A stretch of 63,578 bases of DNA, the filler included, from Reticulomyxa filosa (Eukaryota > Protista > Foraminifera), in the NCBI GenBank assembly GCA_000512085.1. It is 14 parts of 14 records of this genome, joined end to end, with 100 filler letters (N's around TTAATTAATTAA, not from the genome) between each part and the next. Parts side by side here need not be neighbours in the genome. Positions count along the whole stretch, not along the records: positions 23,007 to 37,459 come from ASPP01023434.1; 13 more parts are not named here. One strand, 5' to 3'. Positions within the stretch are counted from its first letter, which is position 1. Each line of letters begins with the position of its first letter. Below, one piece after another: positions 23,007 to 37,459 of the stretch. The notes beneath the pieces were generated by a model. The model searched no databases. It had not been told where the DNA came from and saw only the letters and a list, made by a program, of their open reading frames with translations. Made by a program: the position numbers and the translations under genes.

Positions 23007-23024
23007 AAAAAAAAAAAAAAAAAT

Positions 23025-25300
23025 TCTTCACAAATATTCTCTCTTTTACTGCAATAAATTTCAGAATTGATGTCTGCGATATCAATTCTTATCCATTCAC
23101 ATTTGTAAAAACCAATGTTGGGATTGTCTTGCAGAAGTAATCTTTTCTTGTTTTCTTGCTCTTCTTCCTTATTTTCAGATAGATTTGGAACAATCGTCGA
23201 GCCTCTTTGTAAAATTTGAGTCTTTTATTTCTTACTTGATTGCATCCTTTCGTTTTCAATATTGTCATCATCTGGTTTTGATCTTTTCAAACTCTTTTGA
23301 TCAATTGGTTTGATTTCAATAGACTGTTTTCTTTTATTTACATTTTCAATCATTTTTTCATCACTATTAATCGAATGATTGACTGTCCTTGTACTTGGAC
23401 TATGCGACTATATATTATCATTAATTTGGTTTGTCAATGATAACAATGAATCGACAGTCGATTTACCAACCGACTTTGCCTTCCATAAGCCTTTAAACTA
23501 TTATTTTCTTTCGAGTTTGTTTGTATATTTCCTCTTGATTCGCTTGGAAATGATGTTATTGTTTATTAAAGATCTTGATATTCGGTCAGAAAATTTTGCA
23601 AGTGGACTTCACTATTCCATAAAAAAACTTTGCATCGCTTTTTTTGCGTCCTGGCTGATTGTGACTTGATCTCCAAATGATTGGCCTTCCACTGGCCTTA
23701 TATATATTCAAATTACTTAATAACAATAACAAAATTCCAATGATAATTCCAGTGATAATTCCAATAAAATTTCAATTAAAGTCTAATCTAAAATTCTTTC
23801 TAAATAACAAATTTGTAATATCCTTTTGATTTTCCAATGACCCTCTTCAAGGGTTTCAAATAGATATTCAAATTAATTTATCCAAAAAATTTCCAATAAA
23901 ATAACTTTATTTCAGAAAAATTCCTAAGTAAATATCTTTCAAAATCTCAAATACCTATTTTCAAAATTAATTTTTGCTCTAATGTTCGGACCTTGGAATA
24001 AAATCCGTTGATATTATTCTGGAATACCAATAGACTGCTGATCATAGATTTGCTTGCATGTTGGTATTCTCAATGTTAATTTCAATCCCCACCTGCATCA
24101 ACATTGGGTTAAGTGATTGCAATAAGTATTGTGATTGCTGGAATGCTGACTTAATCTCTGCCAATTTACGTCTTAGCGATGATAGTTCATTAGCATCAAA
24201 TTTCTTATTCTGCAGCCTTTGATCTTTGTTATTTTTTCTTTTATTCTTCTTTCTATTGGCTCTTCTTTGGTTTTCGAAGTCCATTATTATCTTTATTTCC
24301 ATTTAATCTTTTTTCTTTGCTTGCTGCACATTTAAAAAATAAATAAATTATTGTCATTCATCATTGGTAACCAAAAGCCAAAAGTATTGAAAGAAACAAC
24401 CAACGCTCTAGTGAAGGGACAAAATGTCCAAAATACATCTCCCATAGTGGCATTGCCAAAATTCAAGATAATTTACCTCGTGAAAAACGTTCAGCAGCAA
24501 TAATTAGTCCTTATGACTTGCAAAGAGCTGCTGTTTTCTTTAGTAAATCTGGAGGCTTTGTGATATCAGCCGGTCTGATAAAAATCTACGTTGATAGTTC
24601 CACAGTTCTACGAAAGAAATATTAAAATGTTTTTGTTTGTTGTTTATGTTCATTTTTTTTCATTGTATTTCTTTGTATTAAACCTTTATTCTACTTTTGC
24701 TATTTGTCTCTTTGGTGTGCATGAATATGCTCAATGTCGTATTTATTGATTACTTGTAAGTCATCGTAATTTTGGTACTGTATTTCGTGTGATTGATGTA
24801 CTTGGTTACGATGTTTTTTTTTCGCTTTTTGGAATTTCAATATTACAACATTCTCCATCATCAAAAAAAAGTAATTGTTTGATGAATACGTACTCCTTCC
24901 TTGTAAATTTAATACCAAGCTTCTATTGCTTTGAGAATCACATAACATTGCAATGAATCACTTGTATGCTGTTTTCGATATAATACACACTTGTGTTTAC
25001 TTAGATTATTTTTGTTTCGTCATTTGCCACTCTTGGTTTGTCAATCTGCAATATTTACATACTTTACTTTTCTTTGTACATTCACTATCAATATGGTTCA
25101 ATCTTTAACATTTCCTGCATTCATATCTATTCACGTCATGATCAGTCACTGCTTCTTCACACTTTTTCTTGTTACTATAATACTTTTCTGGACAAAACAT
25201 AATCGAAGATTATGATGCACGTGTCCAAATTTGAAGGTCAAAACCTCATTTTTCCTTTCTTTTGATTGTGCCATAATGATATTTTTGTATTCCTCCTAAG
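23025..25300 (-). mobile_element. Decayed non-LTR retrotransposon (ORF1 with three CCHC knuckles; possible start of AP-endonuclease ORF)
   Basis: 24945..25119 translates as CRKC*RLNHIDSEC / CKYCRLTN..SGK* / KCVLYRKQHTSDSLQC, the triple zinc knuckle of LINE ORF1. A basic plus coiled-coil tail lies at 24042..24302. A stop-riddled frame at ~23030-23700 ends near IGF/FTNVNG, resembling APE motif I. Confidence 0.65.
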
Positions 25301-25601
25301 CCGTAAAGTGTCCTAAGGCTGGTCTCAATTGTTTTAAATAGAAAATGAAAACATTGCTCACTTTAGAAAAAAAATGAATTATTGATATTAATCTAGAAAT
25401 AATAAATGGACATTAACCTGTTTTAATATTGAAATTATACGTTTTAGATCAGATTTTTTAATGTGTGGGGAAGACCACAAAACTCTAAAAGCGATGACAA
25501 AACATATCCTTTGAGGATTTTTGTTCGCGTCAGAAGGGAGAATAAAGGAAAAAAGAACTCTAACTGCACCAATGAAAAAAAACCAAATATAAAGAATAAA
25601 A

Positions 25602-26870
25602 TTAAGAAAAATTGGGGTCCCAAACCCAGCAATTGGACAACCATTTTTCACCTTCAAGAACAGGCATAGCCTCATGTAAGGTCAAGGTATCGGCGTTCCC
25701 GTCTTCCAACATATTATAAAACATGACGACGGAGCCTTGTCCAGGATGAACCTTCAAGTCAATACGCGGGAAGTGTGTTTCCCCACCGCTGCTGTTTGAA
25801 ACTTGATTATTGAGATATATCAAAAAAGTGAGAAATCGCATTTGTTCGCGATTATTTCTCCAGTCGTGGTGGGGGCGATAGTATTGCTTCAATTGATAGC
25901 GTACAACCTGAAGACTCTCAGCACCAATGGTATCCCAGAGATGAAAATGGTCGATGTTAATGGCGTGAGCAATTCTCCGAAAGATCCAATCAACGGCTTC
26001 GGTGAACGAACGTTTGACCCAAGCTGTGCTCGACGTTCGGGTGAGGTCTTCAAAGGCCTGTGCACCCACTTGAGAGCGTCGCAACAAAGGCTGTGCCAAG
26101 TCGATAATGTGTTGACATTCAAATGGACTCAAAAAATTTTTCAAAAGAAGCACTTTCGGTTTAACCGACAATACCGACCATTCCAAAGTGATAGGTTTTT
26201 TTTCTATCAAGCATTTTTTCAATTCCTTTTTGTTGACAAAGGATTGTGGATAACACTTCAAATGAGTATAGTTAGTTTTCACTTGGAATGTCTGTCCGAT
26301 TTCGGTCACTGGATACATATAAAGGACTGGCTTTGGCCGCGGATAAAAAGATTCCCATTCAATCCCTTTTTGCTCTTTGTAAAATTTTTGAAAGGCTGCT
26401 GCTTCCTTCTTCAATTTCTCTTCTTCCAATTTTCTTTGCTCTTCAGTTTTAAATATCAACTGGTTCACACCATATTTCATTGTTGTCCAGTACAATTTCT
26501 CGTGTGAATGTCCTGGGTGTTGATAGTAGAACTGATGTCCTTGGTACGTGCCGATCTTTATTACCTCATTTGGGCGTAGCACACCTTGCAACACTCCATC
26601 TCGTCCGTTGTCATAATACAGTTCCACCACTTCATCGCTTTCGTTGATAAATTCTACCCAATATTGCTGCGGAGGAGGACCTGGCACTTGCGTGTATTTC
26701 AGTGCTGTTGGTGGCAACTCGTCCGGAACACTGTCTAAGTCTGCCAGCCTACGATCCTCGTTATGCGTCCTCCCGTCACTGTCCACTGACACGGTTTCTA
26801 TTTCTTCCTGTCCTTTGCATAACGCAATCAGTATTAAAAAAATTAAGGCAAGAAGTGAGTAATGTCCCAT
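25602..26870 (-). CDS. Secretory prolyl 4-hydroxylase alpha (2OG-Fe(II) oxygenase) with N-terminal VHL-beta-like domain
   Basis: Signal peptide; LSVKPKVLLLKNFLSPFECQHII, RTSSTAW, ESLQVVRY, YRPHHD (HxD), TFLIYLN, GGETHFP, LHEAMPVLEGEKW (distal His and 2OG Lys). Intronless, 422 aa. Confidence 0.92.
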   Translation of the reverse strand: MGHYSLLALIFLILIALCKGQEEIETVSVDSDGRTHNEDRRLADLDSVPDELPPTALKYTQVPGPPPQQYWVEFINESDEVVELYYDNGRDGVLQGVLRPNEVIKIGTYQGHQFYYQHPGHSHEKLYWTTMKYGVNQLIFKTEEQRKLEEEKLKKEAAAFQKFYKEQKGIEWESFYPRPKPVLYMYPVTEIGQTFQVKTNYTHLKCYPQSFVNKKELKKCLIEKKPITLEWSVLSVKPKVLLLKNFLSPFECQHIIDLAQPLLRRSQVGAQAFEDLTRTSSTAWVKRSFTEAVDWIFRRIAHAINIDHFHLWDTIGAESLQVVRYQLKQYYRPHHDWRNNREQMRFLTFLIYLNNQVSNSSGGETHFPRIDLKVHPGQGSVVMFYNMLEDGNADTLTLHEAMPVLEGEKWLSNCWVWDPNFS

Positions 26871-27425
26871 TACAAATTGACCCTTTCTTTTTTTATTAAA
26901 GTTTTTTTATGGGTTCACTGTCAAAGTTTTTTAAAAGCAAACAAGTGCCACAAAGTAAGGGTCTACTTCACAAAAATTGCTCAAGCAATCTCTAATTTGC
27001 TTTTCCCCTGCCAAAGAAAAGTTACTTTACATATTAAATATGGATAAACCTCAAGGGAAAGCAAGGTTATTGACTTCCATCGCAACATAAACTTATAAAA
27101 CAAGCAAGCCCTGAAAAGTTGGTAGTATGTGTTGATTTTTTTACGCAAGTGGTAAAAAAAAAAGGGGGACAATTATTTTTTGTACGTTGAAAGGGGCAAA
27201 AAAACCTTGCCTGATCGAAATTTAGTAAATTTGTAAAAGATATCTCGTTATTTTACAAGCTCAACAAAGAACAAAAAAAAAAAAAAATTCGTGAAGAAAG
27301 AAAAACAAAACAAAGTGCTAAGACAAAGAACCACCGGACAAGTCTCTCCGTCAATGAATTCAGTGTACCAATATGTATCTTATCTGTCAATATTTCTTTG
27401 TTCGTTTGCTTCTCCTTCTTTGAGT

Positions 27426-28418
27426 CTACTTATCCGTTTCATCGAGAGTGATGGCATTGGCCGGTAGTTTTTGCGAGGTGAGTTGCATGTGCGCCTGCGT
27501 GATACGTACTTTGAAGCGTGTGAGAATGGCTTGATGTAAGGAGTTGCAAAAAAAGAGGTAAAAGAGCTCGGTAAAATTGAGTGAGAGAAACAAACAAGTG
27601 AGATTGACAGCACAATCAAGAGCAATAGCGACGAAAATGAAAAGTTCTAAAGGAAAGTTTGCGATCTTGACCAAAAGACCGATAGCAATGACAACCACGG
27701 TCACGCAAGTGCTCGTGAGTGCAAGCGATGCCAAAATGGTATATCTGGTCATGACTTGAATTAGAGACAGTTGTTGGTTGTTCAGCTCCAAAGTGTTGTC
27801 GGGATTGATCATCATACTATATCTCGAACTCGCTAAGTACAACAGCTTGCCCACAAATAAAGACACCAAATGCACAACACTGCCCATGTACAACAGCGTT
27901 GCTGTGATCGCCAAAGATACAGATGTTGTGCTGGCGTGGTTTGGAGTCACTTTCATTTGCAAGAATGCATATAACACACAATAAATTGGAACCGGCACCA
28001 ACAGGAACAATCGTTGCCGACGCGACAATCGTAGTCGTGGTGAGCCTTGGAACGTATAATGCAGCCTACCTGCCAACAATATGTATACACCAATCAATCC
28101 TAAATAATACATTGGCGTGCCCGTCATTGCCAACCCTACTGTCACTTGCGCTTGCTCGCCTATGCAGAATCCAAATGCAATCGGGGCCATCAACGAATAT
28201 CCGCTCCAACATGTTGCACAAAATATTGTCATCATCCAAAAAAATAACGAAAAGCTCACTCTGCTCGTCCACAGATACTTTAACAACCGTCCGTACATTG
28301 TCGTCACAATTATTGTACCAACACCACATATGCAAGCGCTTACCCATGCCACGGGCTTGGTTGTTGGATCATTACACACCTTTATACCCCAATCCAACAG
28401 CTGAGCATACGTTACCAT
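27426..28418 (-). CDS. Seven-transmembrane GPCR-like orphan protein
   Basis: Intronless 330 aa; seven hydrophobic segments, RL after TM3, D..VN in TM7, and a Cys-containing helix-8-like tail. Confidence 0.7.
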   Translation of the reverse strand: MVTYAQLLDWGIKVCNDPTTKPVAWVSACICGVGTIIVTTMYGRLLKYLWTSRVSFSLFFWMMTIFCATCWSGYSLMAPIAFGFCIGEQAQVTVGLAMTGTPMYYLGLIGVYILLAGRLHYTFQGSPRLRLSRRQRLFLLVPVPIYCVLYAFLQMKVTPNHASTTSVSLAITATLLYMGSVVHLVSLFVGKLLYLASSRYSMMINPDNTLELNNQQLSLIQVMTRYTILASLALTSTCVTVVVIAIGLLVKIANFPLELFIFVAIALDCAVNLTCLFLSLNFTELFYLFFCNSLHQAILTRFKVRITQAHMQLTSQKLPANAITLDETDK

Positions 28419-28669
28419 TGTAAATTGATGCTAGTGTTTTTCAATTGTTGCGTAAAAAAAGGGGCGAAAAAAGCACACGGTACATTTTTTAGTCACAGAG
28501 ACGACCACTTCTTTTTAAATTAAAGTTTTGCGTTTCTATAAGGCACGATTTGATTTTTGCGTGCGAAAATTTAGAAAAATAATTCGACATGCAGTTAAAT
28601 GTAAATGTTATAGAAAATTTTATCTTTCGCTTCACAATTCGGATTTAAAAAACATTGCAGGAAAAAAAG

Positions 28670-31600
28670 TCAAGTCTTTACGTCTGTGTTTGTTGGTGCT
28701 TCATTGTGCGTTTCCGATTGTTTTGTATCCTCTTCGCAGACTAACTCAATGGTCTGCTTATCGAATTCGTCCAGCTTTCTCATGGACATGATGTGCTCTA
28801 CCAAGACCAACTTGTGTTTAACTTGTTTTTTTGTGTTGAATGTAAAATAGTATTATATCACATGCGTGTATGTATAATTTTAGAAAATAGGGATTCCCTT
28901 GTCTAAAAAAAAGTTTTTTTGAGGAATAAACTTGTAGTTTGGGAAGGACTGATGTAAGGATCGGTCTTTTTTTCTTCGTTTGCAGTTTCTTGTGGTAGAG
29001 TTTTATTCTCACTATCAGTGTCTTTTTTTGTGTCGTTACAATCCTCAGATGTATATTGATAGGTTTGGACATGACACGCAGAATCAAGCATGATACTGTC
29101 GTTTTTAATAAAATCAACAACTGCTTTTGCGAAAGGAGATTGCGAAATGGGGGTACGTATTTGATTTTGCCGTTGGTATTGCAGCTTTTCTTGGAGATTG
29201 TTTCCCTTCAATGTCTCTTTCACATTTGCGGACAACGGATCGTGGTTCATCACTTTGTTGCCGTTGGTCGAACCAAAGCCAAACAAATTGCCCATGAAGG
29301 ACACGGTCTGCGTGGGCACGGTCAAGGACGATCCGACAAGAGAGTCGCCTTTCGAATGTGCAGGACAAGGAAGTGAGGCATTTTTTACTGGGGCATATCC
29401 AATTAACATGAAACTTGAAAAAGGTTGGAAACAGCGTTCCACAAAGCGATTCATAATACGCTGTTGAGCAGATGACAATATCAGCGCTTGTTTACCTAAA
29501 GCATCTGGAATTGATTTGCATAAATCAAACAATGAACGATCATGTAATGATATTCTTTCAAATACTCTGTAGTATTTCAAACCAAACATTTCTGATAATT
29601 TAAATTAAATATACATACATACATATATGTGATGTATGCATACGTGTGTGAACTAAGGTTTTCGAAATCCCAAGCCCGTATTAAAAAAAAGTTGAAAGAA
29701 CCTGCAAGCCATGACATTGCGCAAAACAATATTTGCAAAACGAGCCGTGAACAATGTTAGCAAATATCTAAAGACAGGACAAGGCAGCAACTTTTTTGGG
29801 GAAAAAAAGAAATTGTCCAAACGACTGTTGAGAAAGAGGCCCAAGCGCTTCGTGTCTATGTCTTCGTGGATGTTAAAGTATGCTGTGTTTTCAAAACGAC
29901 TTAGTAACAGTCGACAAATGATATCCAATAGTTGTTCTTCGATTTTGCGAATTTTGGAAACACTGTTCAATGCATTGATCCCTGCAAATTCCTCACGTAA
30001 ATGCTATTTTTATTTTGTGAACAATAAAATGATCATTCATTAATATACACATTTATTTATTATTATTATTATTATTATTGTGATTGATACCTTTTTGGAC
30101 TCTGTTTCTAAAGTTTCAATAAGTTGACAGGCACTCCGTAACGTGTTGAAAACAACACAAGTATAAGTGATCAAGTCTTTGATAAATATCGCGTCCAATA
30201 ATTTGGTATTGGCTTCGATTTCATGTAAAATTTTCTCGTCGAAGCAATCCCTCTTGGATGATCTTTCAATCCAGTGACTAATTTCATAGTTGATATACAT
30301 CAATTGCTCTAATTGGGATCCACCTACTTTCTTCACTTCATTTAGCAAATTTCTGCAGTAATCTTCAAGCATAGCCGCGCATCGCTGTTATTTTTTGTTT
30401 GTTTAAAAAAGATGTGTTTTCTCTCATATATTTTTTATTTTTCAACATCTTTGTAAGACAAAAAAAACAATTTTATTACCGTAATCAATTGCGACAAGTA
30501 AATATCATGATTGACAGCAGCGCATTTGTTAACTTTGTCGCTGATGATATGGCCGATGGAAACAATAGTTTGCAAGGACGTCAAAGCGTTACTTTTGGGG
30601 TCTTGCAAATTGAGCAATACGTTTTTTTCTTTTAGCTCCGCAAACGATTCCTGTTGCTGTGCTTTGGTACACTGCACTTTTAACTCACTTAAGCACTGCT
30701 CAATGAAATGATTTAAATTTCTTTCTAACTGCTTTGTGAACATTCCATCCACTTTTTTTTGTATGTGTACGTGTATATATGCATACGTATATGTGATAAA
30801 TGATTTATGCAAAAAAAAAAACAGAAAGAGCCTTGTATAAACAATGCACAATAGCAAAAAAAAAAATAGTAGGGAGAAAAGTGTTAACGTGATGCAACAA
30901 AGAGCTTGTGTGATGAGTCTTGTGGCAAACGCGACATCATTTTGTCAGTGGACAAAGGGTGTATATCCACGACCCGACGCAACTGACAAGGGCCATCCCC
31001 TACTTGTCTCTTTTCGCATGCAGAAATGCGTGTCCAGAGAGTGGAGTCATGGGAACTCTTTTTCACTCCAATGAACACAAACGATTCGTTATCTGACGGC
31101 AGTTGGGATGCGTCAACTTGCAATTGCTTCCATTGTCCGTGATGACTAACCTTTCCAATTGCATAATGCACTGTCATCACAACAAGTGAGGATTCGTTCA
31201 CTGTGCTACGTATTTGTTATTGTTTTAATCATTTATCGTACCATTTTTCATTTATCAACATCATATACATATATACATGTGTGTAATATCCTATAAAAGA
31301 AACCTTAAAAATTTTTCAATTTGTGCGTTGAAATCATTTTTTAAAACATTGACATCAAACGTTTCCGAATGCCAAGTATTGCGATTGTCGATGCCGATGG
31401 CAACCACACTCAGTCCATTGCCGCGTTTGCGATAGTCTTTGTCATCAATTTTGATCCACGAGACGGGGAGTGCTTGGTCTTTATCACACCAACTTCGAAC
31501 GTCCACCTCAATGCTCAAGATGCTTCGTAGCATATCGTCCATCAGTTCCTTTTCAAATTCCGAAAAGAGACGTTGCAATTCTGTCAACACCTCTATGTCC

Positions 31601-34600
31601 ATTGGCTGACTGTCCAACAGATCATTTATTTCATTGATAACTATACATATATCATTATTACATTGTTGTAGCGAACAATAATTTTTGTTTAAAAAAAGTA
31701 ACTTTGTGCAGAAAAGGTAGTTATCAATTGCGTCATAATATCCCAGCGCTTTGGTAAAAAGGGACGAAATTGACGTTGATATTGCTCTTTAATCTTTACA
31801 TATTGCACTCTATATTTCTATGCATTTGTTCAGTTTATTGTTTTAATCAGAGATTATCTTTTGTTATTTGATAAACGTAGTTGTCTCGTTAACTGACAAT
31901 ACTTTGTCCAAATTATTCAAGTGTGCCTGCTTATGACCGATCTGGAGATGATGATTGAAGAAGGGAGAGATAAGAGGTGAGAAGAAAAACAAACAAGCCC
32001 ATTCAAGTAACACAAATTAACAGAGCAAAAAAAAAAAACAGACCAATTGTTGAATGATGTAATTGACAATCTTGTCTTTGCCAGACGGTATTTCTTCCAT
32101 GAGTAAGCAAGCGCGATTCAAACGAACAATGGTGCCATCGCTCATATTGTCTCGGGCATAGCAGACGATATCCTTGAAAATGAGATCTCTTGCCTCTTTC
32201 ATTTTGGCATTGAAATCAGTTTCTGCTTGGGAAAGATCTAACAGAAAGAGGAGCATGTCAAAACATGATTACAGTTATTATTTGTGATCGTTGTAACAAA
32301 TCAAAACTTCGTAATGTTTGCACAACATCCCGTTTGGTAAGTAGGATTTGCAAACCCAAACGCAGATCCTCCAATCTTTCATACCAAGCAATGGCCTTGC
32401 GCACACTGTTGTCCGTTTCAAAGTCGCTAAACTCTTTTTTTCCTTCGGACAAGAGTCGTTCCAAATGTCGGATGTTTCGCAACGTTAAATACCAAACTTG
32501 CTCTATCTTTTGAATTGTCTCAATCCCGTCCCAACTCACATCCGCCATCGACTTTTCGTCAATCGGCATGCTCTTCATTGACAACAACGAGTTGGAATTG
32601 CAAACAGAAGAATTGCTGTCGCTGTCAATGGGTAGTGGAACAGAGGCAGACTTATGGTCTTTTTTCTCATTGCCATTGCTATTGTTATTGTTATTGTTAT
32701 TGTTACCGTTGTTATTGCTAGTACTATAGCTATTGCCATTGCCATTGCCATTACCATTGCTATTACCATTGCTATTATCATTGCTAGTACCATTGCTATT
32801 ACCATTGCCATTGTCATTACCAGTGCTATTGTCAATCAAATCTCCCGATGACTTTTCGTCTTTCAAAGTGTCATTGCTCACTTCGAAAAGATTGAATTGA
32901 AACACGTGTTTGATCTTTTGCACCCATTCATCGCATTCTTTCGTATCTTTGCAATCCAAATGATACATTTGATGCGGAAATGACAAATCAAAACTGCGTG
33001 CCCCTCTTCGCGCTTTTTCCGACCGTCCAAGTTTGCGCACCGATTGCAGCAAACCTACTTCAATCGTCCCTACACGCATAAATACAAATACTTTTTGGTG
33101 AAAACTTTTTAACAACAAAGACAATACTTGAATGATCAACTTTTCAATTTGGTGCCATTGAAATACTCCAAATTTCGATTTCCAGTTAATACAAAAAACG
33201 CCTTTTGAACGCGCGACATGGTAGACTTTCTTATTTTGAAGTAAAGCCATATTTCATGGCACGATACAACGATTCCGCCTGGGATATGTGTGAAGCGGAC
33301 AAGGAGGGCAGGATTTCGTCCAAATTGCCGTGCATTTGATCTCCAATGCACATCATTGGAGTGGTCAACTCCGCGCCAAGACGAGACTGACAATACACAC
33401 TCACTGCAGGCGCCCAAGGCAGACACGCTTCACTGTTCCACACTTGTTCATTACTTCGTGTTCGAACACATTGTTTGCCTTGCAAATCTGTTCACATATT
33501 AGTTAACGTTTGTTATATTTATACAAATATATACATATATATATGTATATAACAATCTCTTAACTATTGAAAATGTAACACACCTACATACTCTTCGGTG
33601 ACCTGCATCGGACTGAGCTTGCTACTTGATTGCTCGCACAGCTTCAAAATTCGATTGGTATATTCTCTTCGCACGCACACGTACCGAGGAACGTCCAAAG
33701 GCGATAAAATATGCTCCCGCGCGGCTGAATTCGCGTAGCCATCAATTGGTAGTGCAATGTCGCCCAATGCAACGTAGTCTTGTGGTGGCATTGCCCTCCA
33801 AAAGCTTCCCAGCGGCACATCCTCGGCTGTGTGGATATATGCATGTGACAACAGTAAACACACAAAACACTTCACTTTTGAATGGAATTAACATTTGTTA
33901 AATTTGGATTTTTGTGGCATGTTCTTTGGGTCTCGTGCGCTCCAAATGCATTTGAATCCAAGTGGGGCTTTGAAAGCTTCCGGATCATTTCCACCCGTTT
34001 TGACGATAATCAATTTGCCCATATTTGGCACGGTAAGTGGATGTTGCCAGTCATTCACCGCGATATGTCCAACCATGTACTCATTTGGGAACAACACGGG
34101 CTCCCACACCGACAACTTTTTCGTCGCGTTTTCCATTAGCGATTCTGATGTCCACACGCATCGAAAGATCGATGTATACGATATTACCAATGGAGAGTCC
34201 GCGATCACAGGGACGTGGCCTTCTCGAAACGAATTTGCTTGTATCCTTTTTTTTTAAAAAAATTCTTTAACTTTATAAGTGCCTCTTGTTTAGAGAAGGA
34301 AAAATTTGGAGTTTAAAACAAACAAAAGGAGTAATAGATATATCGTCACGGATAATTACATGTGTTGTGATTTCCAACGGGGAACAGTAAAAGCAGGACG
34401 TTGATTGGCATGTTTTTGTTCTGGAACAGTTAGACACATGAATGGCATCGGAACAGGGGTGTACACTCCGTAAATGTACTGCTCTGCCAATTGCACAAGA
34501 TGGAAATGACTTTTCTCGTGATGGAGGATCTCTCGAATCACTCGGCCATCTTCCACGTATTCATTGCGCACACATCCCAAGTACTCCATGTGATATTTAT

Positions 34601-36823
34601 CCTTCAAATGTCCTACACTCCATTTCAGTACATTACAAAAAAAAAAAAAAAAAAAGAGTTGTTCATGGCAACAGTGTAACAGATTTAATAAAATATATAT
34701 CTTTTATTTGTCAATTTTTTTTTGTTTTCTCCCTCCTTCTTAACTCTGTTCAAAGTAGGTCAAGATACGATCAGGAATGAATTCTGCAGGTATCTCTTCC
34801 TCTTCTTCAACACACACCGATCCCAATGCAGTATAGCCAGGTGGAGGTTTCAATATCATCCAATATCGATGTGCTTTTGTTTCTTCGACTCGTTCATGTC
34901 GAACAATTTGTAGTCTTTTGTTTTTTTTCGCAATCTCTTTTATTTAAAAAATAAATAAATAAATAAATAAATTCGGACAAACAAAAGTATAAAAAACAAC
35001 TGTTGGGGCGGTTTGATGGCTTCTTTGTCTCGACAATTGGAAGCAAAGAGAAAAGGAATGTTGTTATTGGGATTGATTGCTCTGGTCAACAACAAATGTC
35101 CAAAAAAGAAGATATTGGGCTTTTCCTTGACAAGCGCCTGCGGACGCAGAGGAATGCTGTTTTCGATCCACACTTTTTGCGCGAGAATCGGACTATCTCG
35201 AACGGGCGATTTCACGGACGATTGCGTGGGGACTTGAATATGTTGCGCAATATACTTGGACACATCTGGACACCAAACGGAGAGTTTGTTGTGATGGTAT
35301 CGCACAATTGGCTCTGACATCATCGTCTCGATATCGCACAAACTCAATCGAGACGACGTTATGTCAAAACTGGGCAGCGCCGATGTGCTTATGTGTTCGA
35401 ACGACCAACCGATTCCCACTTTCACGACGGGATATGGAATTGACAGCTGTGCTATGCCCCAATTGCAAAAAAAAAAAAGAAGAGATATCAAATAATGAAT
35501 CCATATGATATAAAAAAAAAAGGTCTTTTAAAATGAATTCGATTAGTAAGCTGTTCGTTTGACTTCATCGGTCAATGGAGACGTGAATCGATTTGTACGC
35601 GAATTGGACTTGTTCGTACTTGGCTCTTCGGCTTCGCTCTCGGACCAGCCGTCGGCCAAGTCCAAAGAATGTCTTCCATTGTATGGTTGCATGGGCAATG
35701 GTTGAACCAATGTGATTTTACCATTTTTATTTGTTTGCACAGTTAGTTTTTTCTTGTCATTATTGTTATCATCACTGTCGTTGTCACTATCATCCTCGTT
35801 GTTGCTGTCATTGCTATGATTCGCATCGTCGTTGCTCGGCTCATTTGTGCCTGCTTGCTTTTTCTCATCGCTCCCGTTATTTGTCGACATTTTCAACTTC
35901 TTCACTATTTCTGACTCTTCTCCCAACACTCGTACGCGCTTCCATTTGCGTCGTCGCACGTTGTGATTCAATTTTCTGCTATTGCAAGTCTGCGGAGATG
36001 TAAATTCTATTTTTTCCCATTTATTTTTATGTTTTATTATTTCTTTCTCTTTTAAAAAAAAAAAAAACAAACCGTAGCCATATTGCCAGCCTTTTTTGTC
36101 TGTACGCTCATCTACATGCACTTTCCAATCATCTTTCCATTCCCACGTTACTGCCAATGCCGCTTCTGCGTCTTTTTTTGTCCTTTGCATATTTGTACAT
36201 ACCATAGGCGCATATGCATATGCATATGCATATGCATATGCCATATGCATATATCATATGCATTGTACTCAATTGCACGCAAAAGACAACTCTTCTTTAC
36301 ATAAAATATACACAAATAAAGAATTACCAACGCCTTGCGTTTGTATCGCACCAATGAGGTGGGTCTCCGGGCTTGTAAGGGGAAGTCCATCTTCCGCCCA
36401 TTTTGCGCTCGTTTTCGACTAATATTGTAACAATATTGGTCACTCCTCTCTCTACTCGACACACACGAGGTCTTCGATGAATCTTTTGTCGGACCAAATA
36501 ACAGTGCTTGTGCTCATGACTCCATCCAACCTCGGGCTGCCACGCGTTTCCAAATGATTTGGAATATCTCCATTCGCTCGCACTCCACTCATCCACCCAA
36601 ACCCATCGATCCTTCCCATTGTCTCTATTTATCGTTGGCAAACCGATATTTTTCGGTTCATCACATGCCTCATAGATCGTATTGGTGAAGTGGTCTGGGT
36701 CGATGTTTGATCGAGGACACGGCCCCCAACCTTTCTGTTTCCAATTTTGTTTTCATGTTTGGGAACTTTTTTTTTCTTAATATATATGCTTTGTGCCTTT
36801 ACATACCAACAACCAGCGCTCAT
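28670..36823 (-). CDS. Very large multi-exon protein: 2x DysF, Vps62/DUF946-like repeats, PH domain, Sec6/CATCHR-like helical C-terminus
   Basis: DysF: ENERKMGGRW..DPPHWCD..WEWKDDW..GWQY..VRRRKWKRVR. Vps62-like: LSVWEP..GHIA, GSFWRAMPPQDYVALGDIA. PH: FFVL..LEYF..GTIEV..SFDL..YHLDCKDTKECDEWVQKI. Last exon VEHIMSMRKLD with stop at 28670-28672. All exons are collinear on one fragment; the single-gene model is inferred. Confidence 0.7.
36211..36240. repeat. (CATATG)5 palindromic hexamer microsatellite, intronic
   Basis: Five exact copies, with degenerate copies flanking. Confidence 0.9.
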
Positions 36824-37459
36824 TTTCCAAAACTATTTCCCAACAAAGTTCCATCCAGCAAACAATGAATGATTCGTCAAATTTTAATAAGGGATAGCAC
36901 GAAGTTTTTATTCATTTGTAGTTCGTCATTTTGTCTTATATTTTTTTTTTTAAGCTGCTCAAACAGCACTTTTTTTGGTATTACATTCGTCCTTAAAAAC
37001 AATTCTTTTAAAATTAATAATTTTATTTCAGTCACATATCTATCAATATTAGAAATATAAAATCATAATGTGGAGAAGCACATAAAAAAGTTTAAAACTA
37101 ATTCAACTTCATGTGGAGCAATCATGAATAATGAAGTTAAATCTTTTCCTGTTTTTTTAAAGAAAAAAAGAAATTAAATTAGTATAAATTGAAAAAATAT
37201 CGATAACGTGATACAACTATCACACCAAAGTGAAAATAATTTTTAATGAAATAAATTATATTTGAAACATTGAAGGCAAAAAGTCTATTAAAAGAAAATA
37301 TTTCTGAACAAATTTCATCTTATTGTTCCTGTTTTTATTTTTGTTAGTATTGCAAACAAAAATAAAAAGGCATTTGTTAAAGAAAATGACATTTAACGTT
37401 TCCAAGAGCTACAGCATGTTGCAAAGAAAACTGAACGCCTAAAACGATATCTTATGATG

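Follow-up and report, generated by a model that had tools for sequence, protein, structure and literature searches.

Can the enzyme that writes hydroxyproline and the domain that reads it be parts of one and the same protein? The question is raised by a gene of the foraminifer Reticulomyxa filosa, carried by a stretch of 63,578 nucleotides, filler included (hereafter, the window), that joins 14 parts of this genome and in which positions 23007–37459 correspond to contig ASPP01023434.1 of assembly GCA_000512085.1. In animal oxygen sensing, the key step is the recognition of hydroxyproline by pVHL, the von Hippel-Lindau tumour suppressor protein, which also provides the handle for most PROTAC drugs. 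We know of essentially no reader of hydroxyproline outside the animal oxygen-sensing pathway, and the origin of the recognition by pVHL is, to our knowledge, obscure. The R. filosa protein fuses two known domain families in a way that had not been annotated before: a VHL-beta-like domain precedes a predicted prolyl 4-hydroxylase (P4H). On balance, and with modest confidence, the evidence favours a secretory P4H joined by a rigid helix to a VHL-beta homologue that reads hydroxyproline and tethers the enzyme to its substrate.

Kinship of the N-terminal domain with the pVHL beta domain

The gene is an uninterrupted single-exon coding sequence, complete from its ATG start to its stop codon (25602..26870, minus strand, 422 aa plus stop), identical to the 422-aa gene call of the public record ASPP01023434.1 and found exactly where the first-pass annotation of the window had placed it. 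From its N-terminus, the product displays a signal peptide, an acidic disordered stretch, a seven-strand beta sandwich, a long helix and the P4H. The full-length protein model is contiguous (predicted local distance difference test, pLDDT, 82.1; predicted template modelling score, pTM, 0.74), and such a pTM for the whole chain, despite about 58 disordered residues, suggests that the modelled domains have a defined arrangement.

The beta sandwich, which the first-pass annotation had likened to the pVHL beta domain, covers aa 66–141 (26448..26675, minus strand) according to the domain model, Foldseek, VIA-align and the family profile. Its own sequence gives no VHL match in Pfam at E ≤ 10, whether searched within the whole protein or as aa 1–234, 62–145 or 56–150, and the window protein does not reach the gathering score of PF01847, which is 21 bits; taken alone, aa 56–150 match no Pfam family whatsoever at E ≤ 10, and phmmer with this segment does not retrieve any VHL match from the PDB at E ≤ 10 either. 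A word-index search with aa 55–235 returned the query protein as its sole match. The peptide from which the likeness had been read, aa 72–116, was correctly numbered in residues, but the nucleotide range given for it, about 26660–26451, was slightly too long on its 3' side, the true one being 26523–26657. The manual alignment of this peptide to pVHL, with 26% identity, is not above chance as a pairwise match alone but is reproduced by the family profile. Therefore, the significance of the similarity comes from profile and structure evidence, the pairwise alignment being insufficient.

To build the family, phmmer was run exhaustively over 1.84 billion cluster representatives with the window domain as query, and this search found 50 proteins at E ≤ 0.001. 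Local iteration showed that most of these proteins have between one and three copies of the domain, and 70 copies were aligned (alignment A2). When each copy was scanned against Pfam, 12 of the 70 matched PF01847 (best E 1.5e-6), while no family other than VHL was matched by more than one copy. One relative, P0029, which the window domain retrieves with an E-value of 8.5e-6, is the sole one above the Pfam threshold, with 26.2 bits against a cut-off of 21 on the exact homologous segment. Searched against PDB sequences, the A2 profile retrieves a single natural family, pVHL (human and mouse), in a contiguous alignment over pVHL residues 72–126 with marginal E-values of 0.08–0.5. The resulting hidden Markov model (HMM) alignment recovers, residue by residue and with one gap at pVHL F91, the correspondence that had been proposed by hand: the aligned pairs (pVHL/window) are F76/F74, N78/N76, S80/S78, V83-V84/V81-V82, N90/N88, L101/L98, P103/P100, I109/I106, Y112/Y109, G114/G111 and H115/H112.

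Structure comparison likewise places the VHL fold on top and not merely a generic sandwich. An AlphaFold2 model of aa 56–150 built on A2 has a mean pLDDT of 92.9 and seven strands. When this model is searched against the PDB with Foldseek, pVHL chains fill all of the top 50 places (E about 1e-4, probability 1.00, template modelling (TM) score by query up to 0.68). VIA-align, which is independent of Foldseek, ranks pVHL first and second among 48,161 representative chains (Z 9.9 and 9.7), with a superposition of 79 residues at a root-mean-square deviation of 2.8 Å (model 11–92 on pVHL 68–156); the next folds, generic lumenal and CBM-like sandwiches, reach Z of at most 7.9. In agreement with these results, the neighbours given to the domain by two ESM Atlas searches include clusters with PF01847 and diatom 2-oxoglutarate (2OG)-oxygenase clusters of 435 and 544 aa.

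A generic Ig-like sandwich of an orphan family could resemble VHL by convergence or by chance, and the lack of any direct significant sequence match of the window domain to VHL, a profile E-value to pVHL of only about 0.1 and an identity of 18–20% in the structural alignments all speak for this explanation. It hardly accommodates, however, the 12 family members that match the VHL family of Pfam, one of them above the curated cut-off and with no other family recurring, nor the first rank of pVHL with two independent structure aligners, nor a collinear alignment in which the F.N and GH motifs and the aromatics occupy identical positions. Convergence thus appears very improbable, and the N-terminal domain is very probably a divergent homologue of the VHL beta domain. 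Compared with the human beta domain (PDB 1VCB, 1LM8 and 4AJY; PF01847), it shares a superposable seven-strand sandwich and the collinear F.N.S, DG loop and Y.GH.[WF] elements.

The putative hydroxyproline pocket and its prolyl 4-hydroxylase partner

The beta domain of human pVHL binds hydroxyproline via W88, Y98, S111, H115 and W117, and the 4-hydroxyl is hydrogen-bonded by Ser111 and His115 (pVHL–HIF structures 1LM8 and 1LQB). The HMM alignment to pVHL assigns to these five positions Y86, Q95, T108, H112 and F114 of the window protein, i.e. the Y/Q/T/H/F pocket that the first-pass annotation had mapped. Most of them belong to the motif GTYQGHQFYY (aa 107–116; 26523..26552, minus strand), where T108 corresponds to S111, G111 to G114, H112 to H115 and F114 to W117. 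Among the 70 copies, the equivalent of W88 is aromatic in 67, that of S111 is Thr or Ser in 61, and G111, H112 and F114 are found in 64, 63 and 66, respectively, these last three being the only columns of A2 that are at least 90% conserved. The best-conserved positions of the domain are the equivalents of Trp88 (as an aromatic), Ser111 (as Thr or Ser), Gly114, His115 and Trp117 (as Phe). At four of the five pocket positions, the residue is thus chemically similar to that of pVHL and strongly kept in the family, the exception being Y98. Trp itself occupies the W88 position in 23 of the 39 copies compared. The copies adjacent to a P4H have an invariant His and always an aromatic residue at the W88 position. 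In proteins with two copies, the pocket is degenerate in some distal copies (P0013, P0054) and intact in the copy proximal to the P4H. The position of Y98 varies among the 70 copies (Q, M or L); in the pelagophyte proteins, a Tyr lies one residue before the aligned position, so that, if a shift of one residue is allowed, they read W/Y/S/H/F against W/Y/S/H/W in pVHL.

The catalytic half is, as predicted from its sequence, a 2OG/Fe(II) prolyl 4-hydroxylase. It comprises an N-terminal extension (aa 172–235) and a double-stranded beta-helix catalytic core (aa 236–417), together encoded by 25620..26357 (minus strand) and identified by PF13640 and by P4H matches in the PDB. The family 2OG-FeII_Oxy_3 (PF13640) matches aa 320–417 with 57.3 bits for a cut-off of 27 (E 3.3e-15). 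A phmmer search of PDB sequences found matches over aa 234–417, the best being the Bacillus anthracis P4H (3itq, E 6e-26), along with Cr-P4H-1 of Chlamydomonas (2jig, E 1.4e-19), the catalytic domain of human C-P4H-II (7zsc, E 1.4e-17) and the P4H of PBCV-1 (5c5t, E 1.6e-15). The iron-binding residues His334-x-Asp336 (25863..25871, minus strand; translation HHD) align with H127 and D129 of the B. anthracis enzyme, and the distal iron ligand His399 and the 2-oxoglutarate-binding Lys409 (25644..25676, minus strand; translation HEAMPVLEGEK) align with its LTLHGGAPVTKGEKW. H334, D336 and H399 are almost invariant in 19 relatives (alignment A4). With the HxD, H and K residues all present, the domain is intact, as had been stated. 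The extension carries a conserved W..FYPR..P motif, of which W172, P177 and R178 are kept among the fusion relatives. Single-domain P4Hs of plants, algae and bacteria (2jig, 3itq, 5c5t) have the closest catalytic domains and the same HxD...H...K residues but differ in that 2jig, 3itq and 5c5t are without any N-terminal binding module. In plants, P4Hs frequently have an additional ShK domain at the C-terminus or are anchored to the membrane by their N-terminus.

If the VHL-like module is active as a reader, it would hold a 4-hydroxyproline of an extended peptide in its conserved Thr/Ser-His-aromatic pocket and so keep the enzyme attached to a proline-rich secreted substrate at a site that is already hydroxylated; the tethered catalytic domain could then hydroxylate neighbouring prolines, leading to processive hydroxylation. 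The parts of this scheme do not have the same strength. An accessory role of the module in peptide binding is probable, whereas there is roughly an even chance, or slightly less, that this binding is specific for hydroxyproline. The main argument for recognition of hydroxyproline over proline is the retention of the equivalents of Ser111 and His115.

Several observations weigh against a reader of hydroxyproline. The equivalent of Tyr98 is Gln95 in the window protein and is variable in the family, Trp117 is replaced by Phe, which makes the pocket shallower, and the evidence of kinship with VHL itself includes the failed Pfam and phmmer searches and the marginal profile E-values reported above. 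In addition, tandem VHL-like copies occur in a MORN-repeat protein of 1,449 aa that is of cytoplasmic type, and the VHL-beta modules of Planctomycetota and Verrucomicrobiota, according to Atlas clusters, are joined to S9 prolyl oligopeptidase/DPP-IV peptidases, SASA 9-O-acetylesterases, sulfatases and leucine-rich repeat (LRR) proteins. Since these bacterial partner enzymes are unrelated and the MORN protein is cytoplasmic in type, the VHL-beta fold need not bind hydroxyproline. The bacterial fusions share with the protist one the same fold (TM by query 0.68–0.74), its use as an accessory module of extracytoplasmic enzymes and, for some of them, a proline-specific enzyme as partner, but their catalytic partners are different and their VHL domain, unlike that of the P4H fusions, is annotated by Pfam.

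These data would also fit a module that binds the unmodified proline-rich substrate (polyproline-II) and captures it without any function of reader, in the manner of the peptide-substrate-binding (PSB) domain of collagen P4Hs (C-P4Hs). The latter binds peptides rich in proline as well as peptides with hydroxyproline (PPG and POG, respectively) and has a role in substrate capture, although its exact role is still debated (PMC12433258). Its binding of both kinds of peptide is also an analogy in favour of the reader. The loss of the Tyr98 equivalent and the Phe at the place of Trp117 agree with such a capture, as do the bacterial VHL-beta modules found on S9/DPP-IV peptidases, whose substrate is unmodified proline. 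However, a pure proline binder would not need the hydroxyl-binding pair, and this pair is kept (Thr or Ser in 61 of 70 copies, His in 63, the His being invariant beside a P4H). Capture of unmodified proline as the only function is thus rather unlikely.

The protist protein and the alpha subunit of the animal collagen P4H, which consists of dimerisation, PSB and catalytic domains, both have a lumenal P4H with homologous catalytic domains (7zsc), a helical element before the catalytic part and a non-catalytic N-terminal module that plausibly binds peptides rich in proline or hydroxyproline. The accessory domain is all-beta and of VHL type in the protist, whereas it is a TPR-like helical PSB domain in the animal enzyme; Pfam P4Ha_N gives no match at E ≤ 10 in the window protein, the N-terminal domain of which is all-beta, and nothing points to a PDI beta subunit or a tetramer. 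By analogy, the substrate problem addressed by the PSB domain in animals may have been solved with a different fold in the protist enzyme.

According to a last explanation, the domain has no role with peptide substrates: it would serve structure or oligomerisation, or the binding of a glycan or another protein, and GH.F would be conserved solely because folding requires it. The beta sandwich is indeed a common one, VIA-align listing the lumenal domains of HGSNAT and PepT and CBM-like domains at Z 5–8; bacterial VHL-beta modules are found on glycan-active enzymes (SASA esterase, sulfatase), and the long helix 143–168 could mediate dimerisation. An almost invariant surface His together with a Thr or Ser would nonetheless be unusual in a purely structural role. 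Moreover, the decay of the pocket is limited to some distal copies, the copy adjacent to the catalytic domain remaining intact, and the fusion partner is repeatedly a P4H across distant lineages. Such a module without reader function therefore looks distinctly improbable, and tethering through hydroxyproline remains the preferred reading.

Secretory features, relatives and genomic surroundings

The predicted signal peptide (aa 1–20; 26811..26870, minus strand), judged by eye from the sequence, has a hydrophobic core at aa 5–17 and small residues preceding Q21; the full-length model shows a helix at residues 6–16, followed by disorder. Relatives also have hydrophobic, signal-like N-termini that correspond to signal peptides or signal anchors. 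The acidic spacer that follows (aa 21–58; 26697..26810, minus strand) is disordered, with a pLDDT below 50 over aa 16–58 of the full-length model, and is not conserved in A3, the alignment and profile of seven full-length fusions. In the consensus of the same alignment, the Cys pair C206 and C220 of the P4H extension is conserved. Given the hydrophobic N-terminus found here and in relatives and this Cys pair, the protein is predicted to be a soluble one of the secretory pathway (lumen of the endoplasmic reticulum or Golgi, or secreted). The two domains are joined by a long charged helix (aa 143–168; 26367..26444, minus strand), assigned by DSSP on the full-length model with a pLDDT of about 90. 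The first-pass annotation had seen a short coiled coil at this place; a helical segment is indeed present, but as one predicted helix of 26 residues.

This helix occupies the place where the alpha domain starts in pVHL. The protist protein differs from pVHL by the lack of an alpha domain, BC box and Cul2 box, replaced by the helix and the P4H, as well as by its signal peptide, the loss of Tyr98 and its sub-threshold Pfam score. Scanning of the whole protein with Pfam gave matches to 2OG families only and none to VHL_C, and no BC-box pattern (consensus [STP]-L-x3-[CSA]-x3-hydrophobic) was found when helix 143–168 was read by eye. A function as substrate receptor of an E3 ligase was considered and rejected, as the protein has neither alpha domain nor BC box and is predicted to be secretory; the predicted signal peptide, and hence the topological separation from the ubiquitin system, would exclude a cytosolic receptor role. 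The protein is therefore a VHL-beta-domain protein and no orthologue of pVHL.

Other protists do have similar fusions, as had been predicted. At least 34 proteins of foraminifera, chrysophytes and a pelagophyte carry both VHL-like and P4H domains; for diatoms, the evidence comes solely from Atlas clusters. The fusions with a named source come from Nonionella stella and Bolivina argentea, two foraminifera that have the closest full-length relatives, together with Chromulina nebulosa, Mallomonas marina and Pelagomonas calceolata (CAH0378632.1). A word search with the A3 profile added more full-length relatives, including P0052 and P0053 at about 50% identity. The fusions include variants with one or two VHL-like copies; the ordinary P4Hs retrieved alongside them (P0066–P0090) are without VHL-like domain. 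Precomputed PF01847 annotation is absent from every fusion protein found, and the fusions score under the Pfam threshold for VHL (for example, 18.5 bits in Bolivina). No description of a VHL–P4H fusion was found in the full-text literature covered, which leaves aside most subscription journals; the sole paper found there that mentions a "VHL-like domain" deals with retron-associated bacterial genes.

Some relatives depart from this architecture. In the exhaustive search, the relative nearest to the window domain is P0002 (47% identity), which consists of a VHL-like domain and the start of the P4H extension. It had been considered as a paralogue from the same genome, which was rejected, since it lies in another assembly (GCA_003358065.1), beside a RecR-like gene. 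It is located at positions 1220–1891 of PJEL010099844.1 (L002), a contig of 2 kb, and the neighbouring gene (Toprim, RecR_C) looks bacterial, which is odd for a gene of eukaryotic type. P0003 (L003:207-4556) and P0008, of about 1,450–1,510 aa and from public run assemblies, have three tandem VHL-like domains (aa about 380–632 in P0003), MORN repeats and weak PDZ and WH2 matches; they are of cytoplasmic type, and the GH.F motif is kept in their aligned copies. P0041, a fragment of 104 aa, carries the C-terminal end of a P4H (GEKW..W.W motif) followed by a VHL-like domain, which points to a reversed order in some relatives, with the P4H ahead of the VHL-like domain, or to an extra downstream copy. 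In P0043 (2,340 aa, ENA), whose N-terminus is signal-like, the N-terminal half of the domain is partially matched nine times between aa 648 and 1494, at a nearly exact spacing of 100 residues; P0043 looks like a repeat protein sharing only part of the fold. In a haptophyte Atlas cluster, the VHL-like fold is joined to a ShK domain, which plant P4Hs can have as well.

The contig piece that carries the gene (window 23007–37459) is AT-rich, with a G+C content of 29–43%. Directly upstream of the P4H gene, an open reading frame (ORF) of 330 aa (27426–28418, minus strand) resembles a multi-pass membrane protein; it has no Pfam match, and the public record gives a product of 290 aa at the same place. 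An imperfect tandem repeat at 32669–32831, with an ATTGCT-like unit of 6, 12 or 36 nucleotides and about 13 copies of 12 nucleotides, sits within another 330-aa ORF (32258..33250, minus strand), where a weak PH_2 match was found (E 0.003). Two microsatellite-like arrays lie at 36210–36263, with about nine copies of (GCATAT)n, and at 23731–23780, with about four copies of a 12-nucleotide unit.

Meaning for hydroxyproline recognition

The natural fusion of a P4H to a VHL-beta homologue provides "Rosetta-stone" evidence, independent of ubiquitin and HIF, that links this fold functionally to hydroxyproline. At least two branches of the SAR supergroup have the fusion with the hydroxyl-binding Ser/Thr-His pair kept, and current domain annotation misses a family of at least 34 proteins. 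For the enzymes themselves, it offers a testable model in which monomeric P4Hs of protists could gain processivity without the animal PSB domain. Such a small secreted binding domain, possibly specific for hydroxyproline, could also become a reagent.

More largely, the VHL beta fold can tentatively be viewed as an old and widespread module of hydroxyproline recognition, an idea that has somewhat less than an even chance of being right. It would include a covalent pair of writer and reader in the secretory pathway of SAR protists, acting in the processive hydroxylation of proline-rich proteins of the wall or matrix, and animal pVHL would have recruited a pre-existing reader of hydroxyproline into a ubiquitin ligase. 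If this is true, the recognition of hydroxyproline by pVHL did not evolve anew for the HIF pathway.

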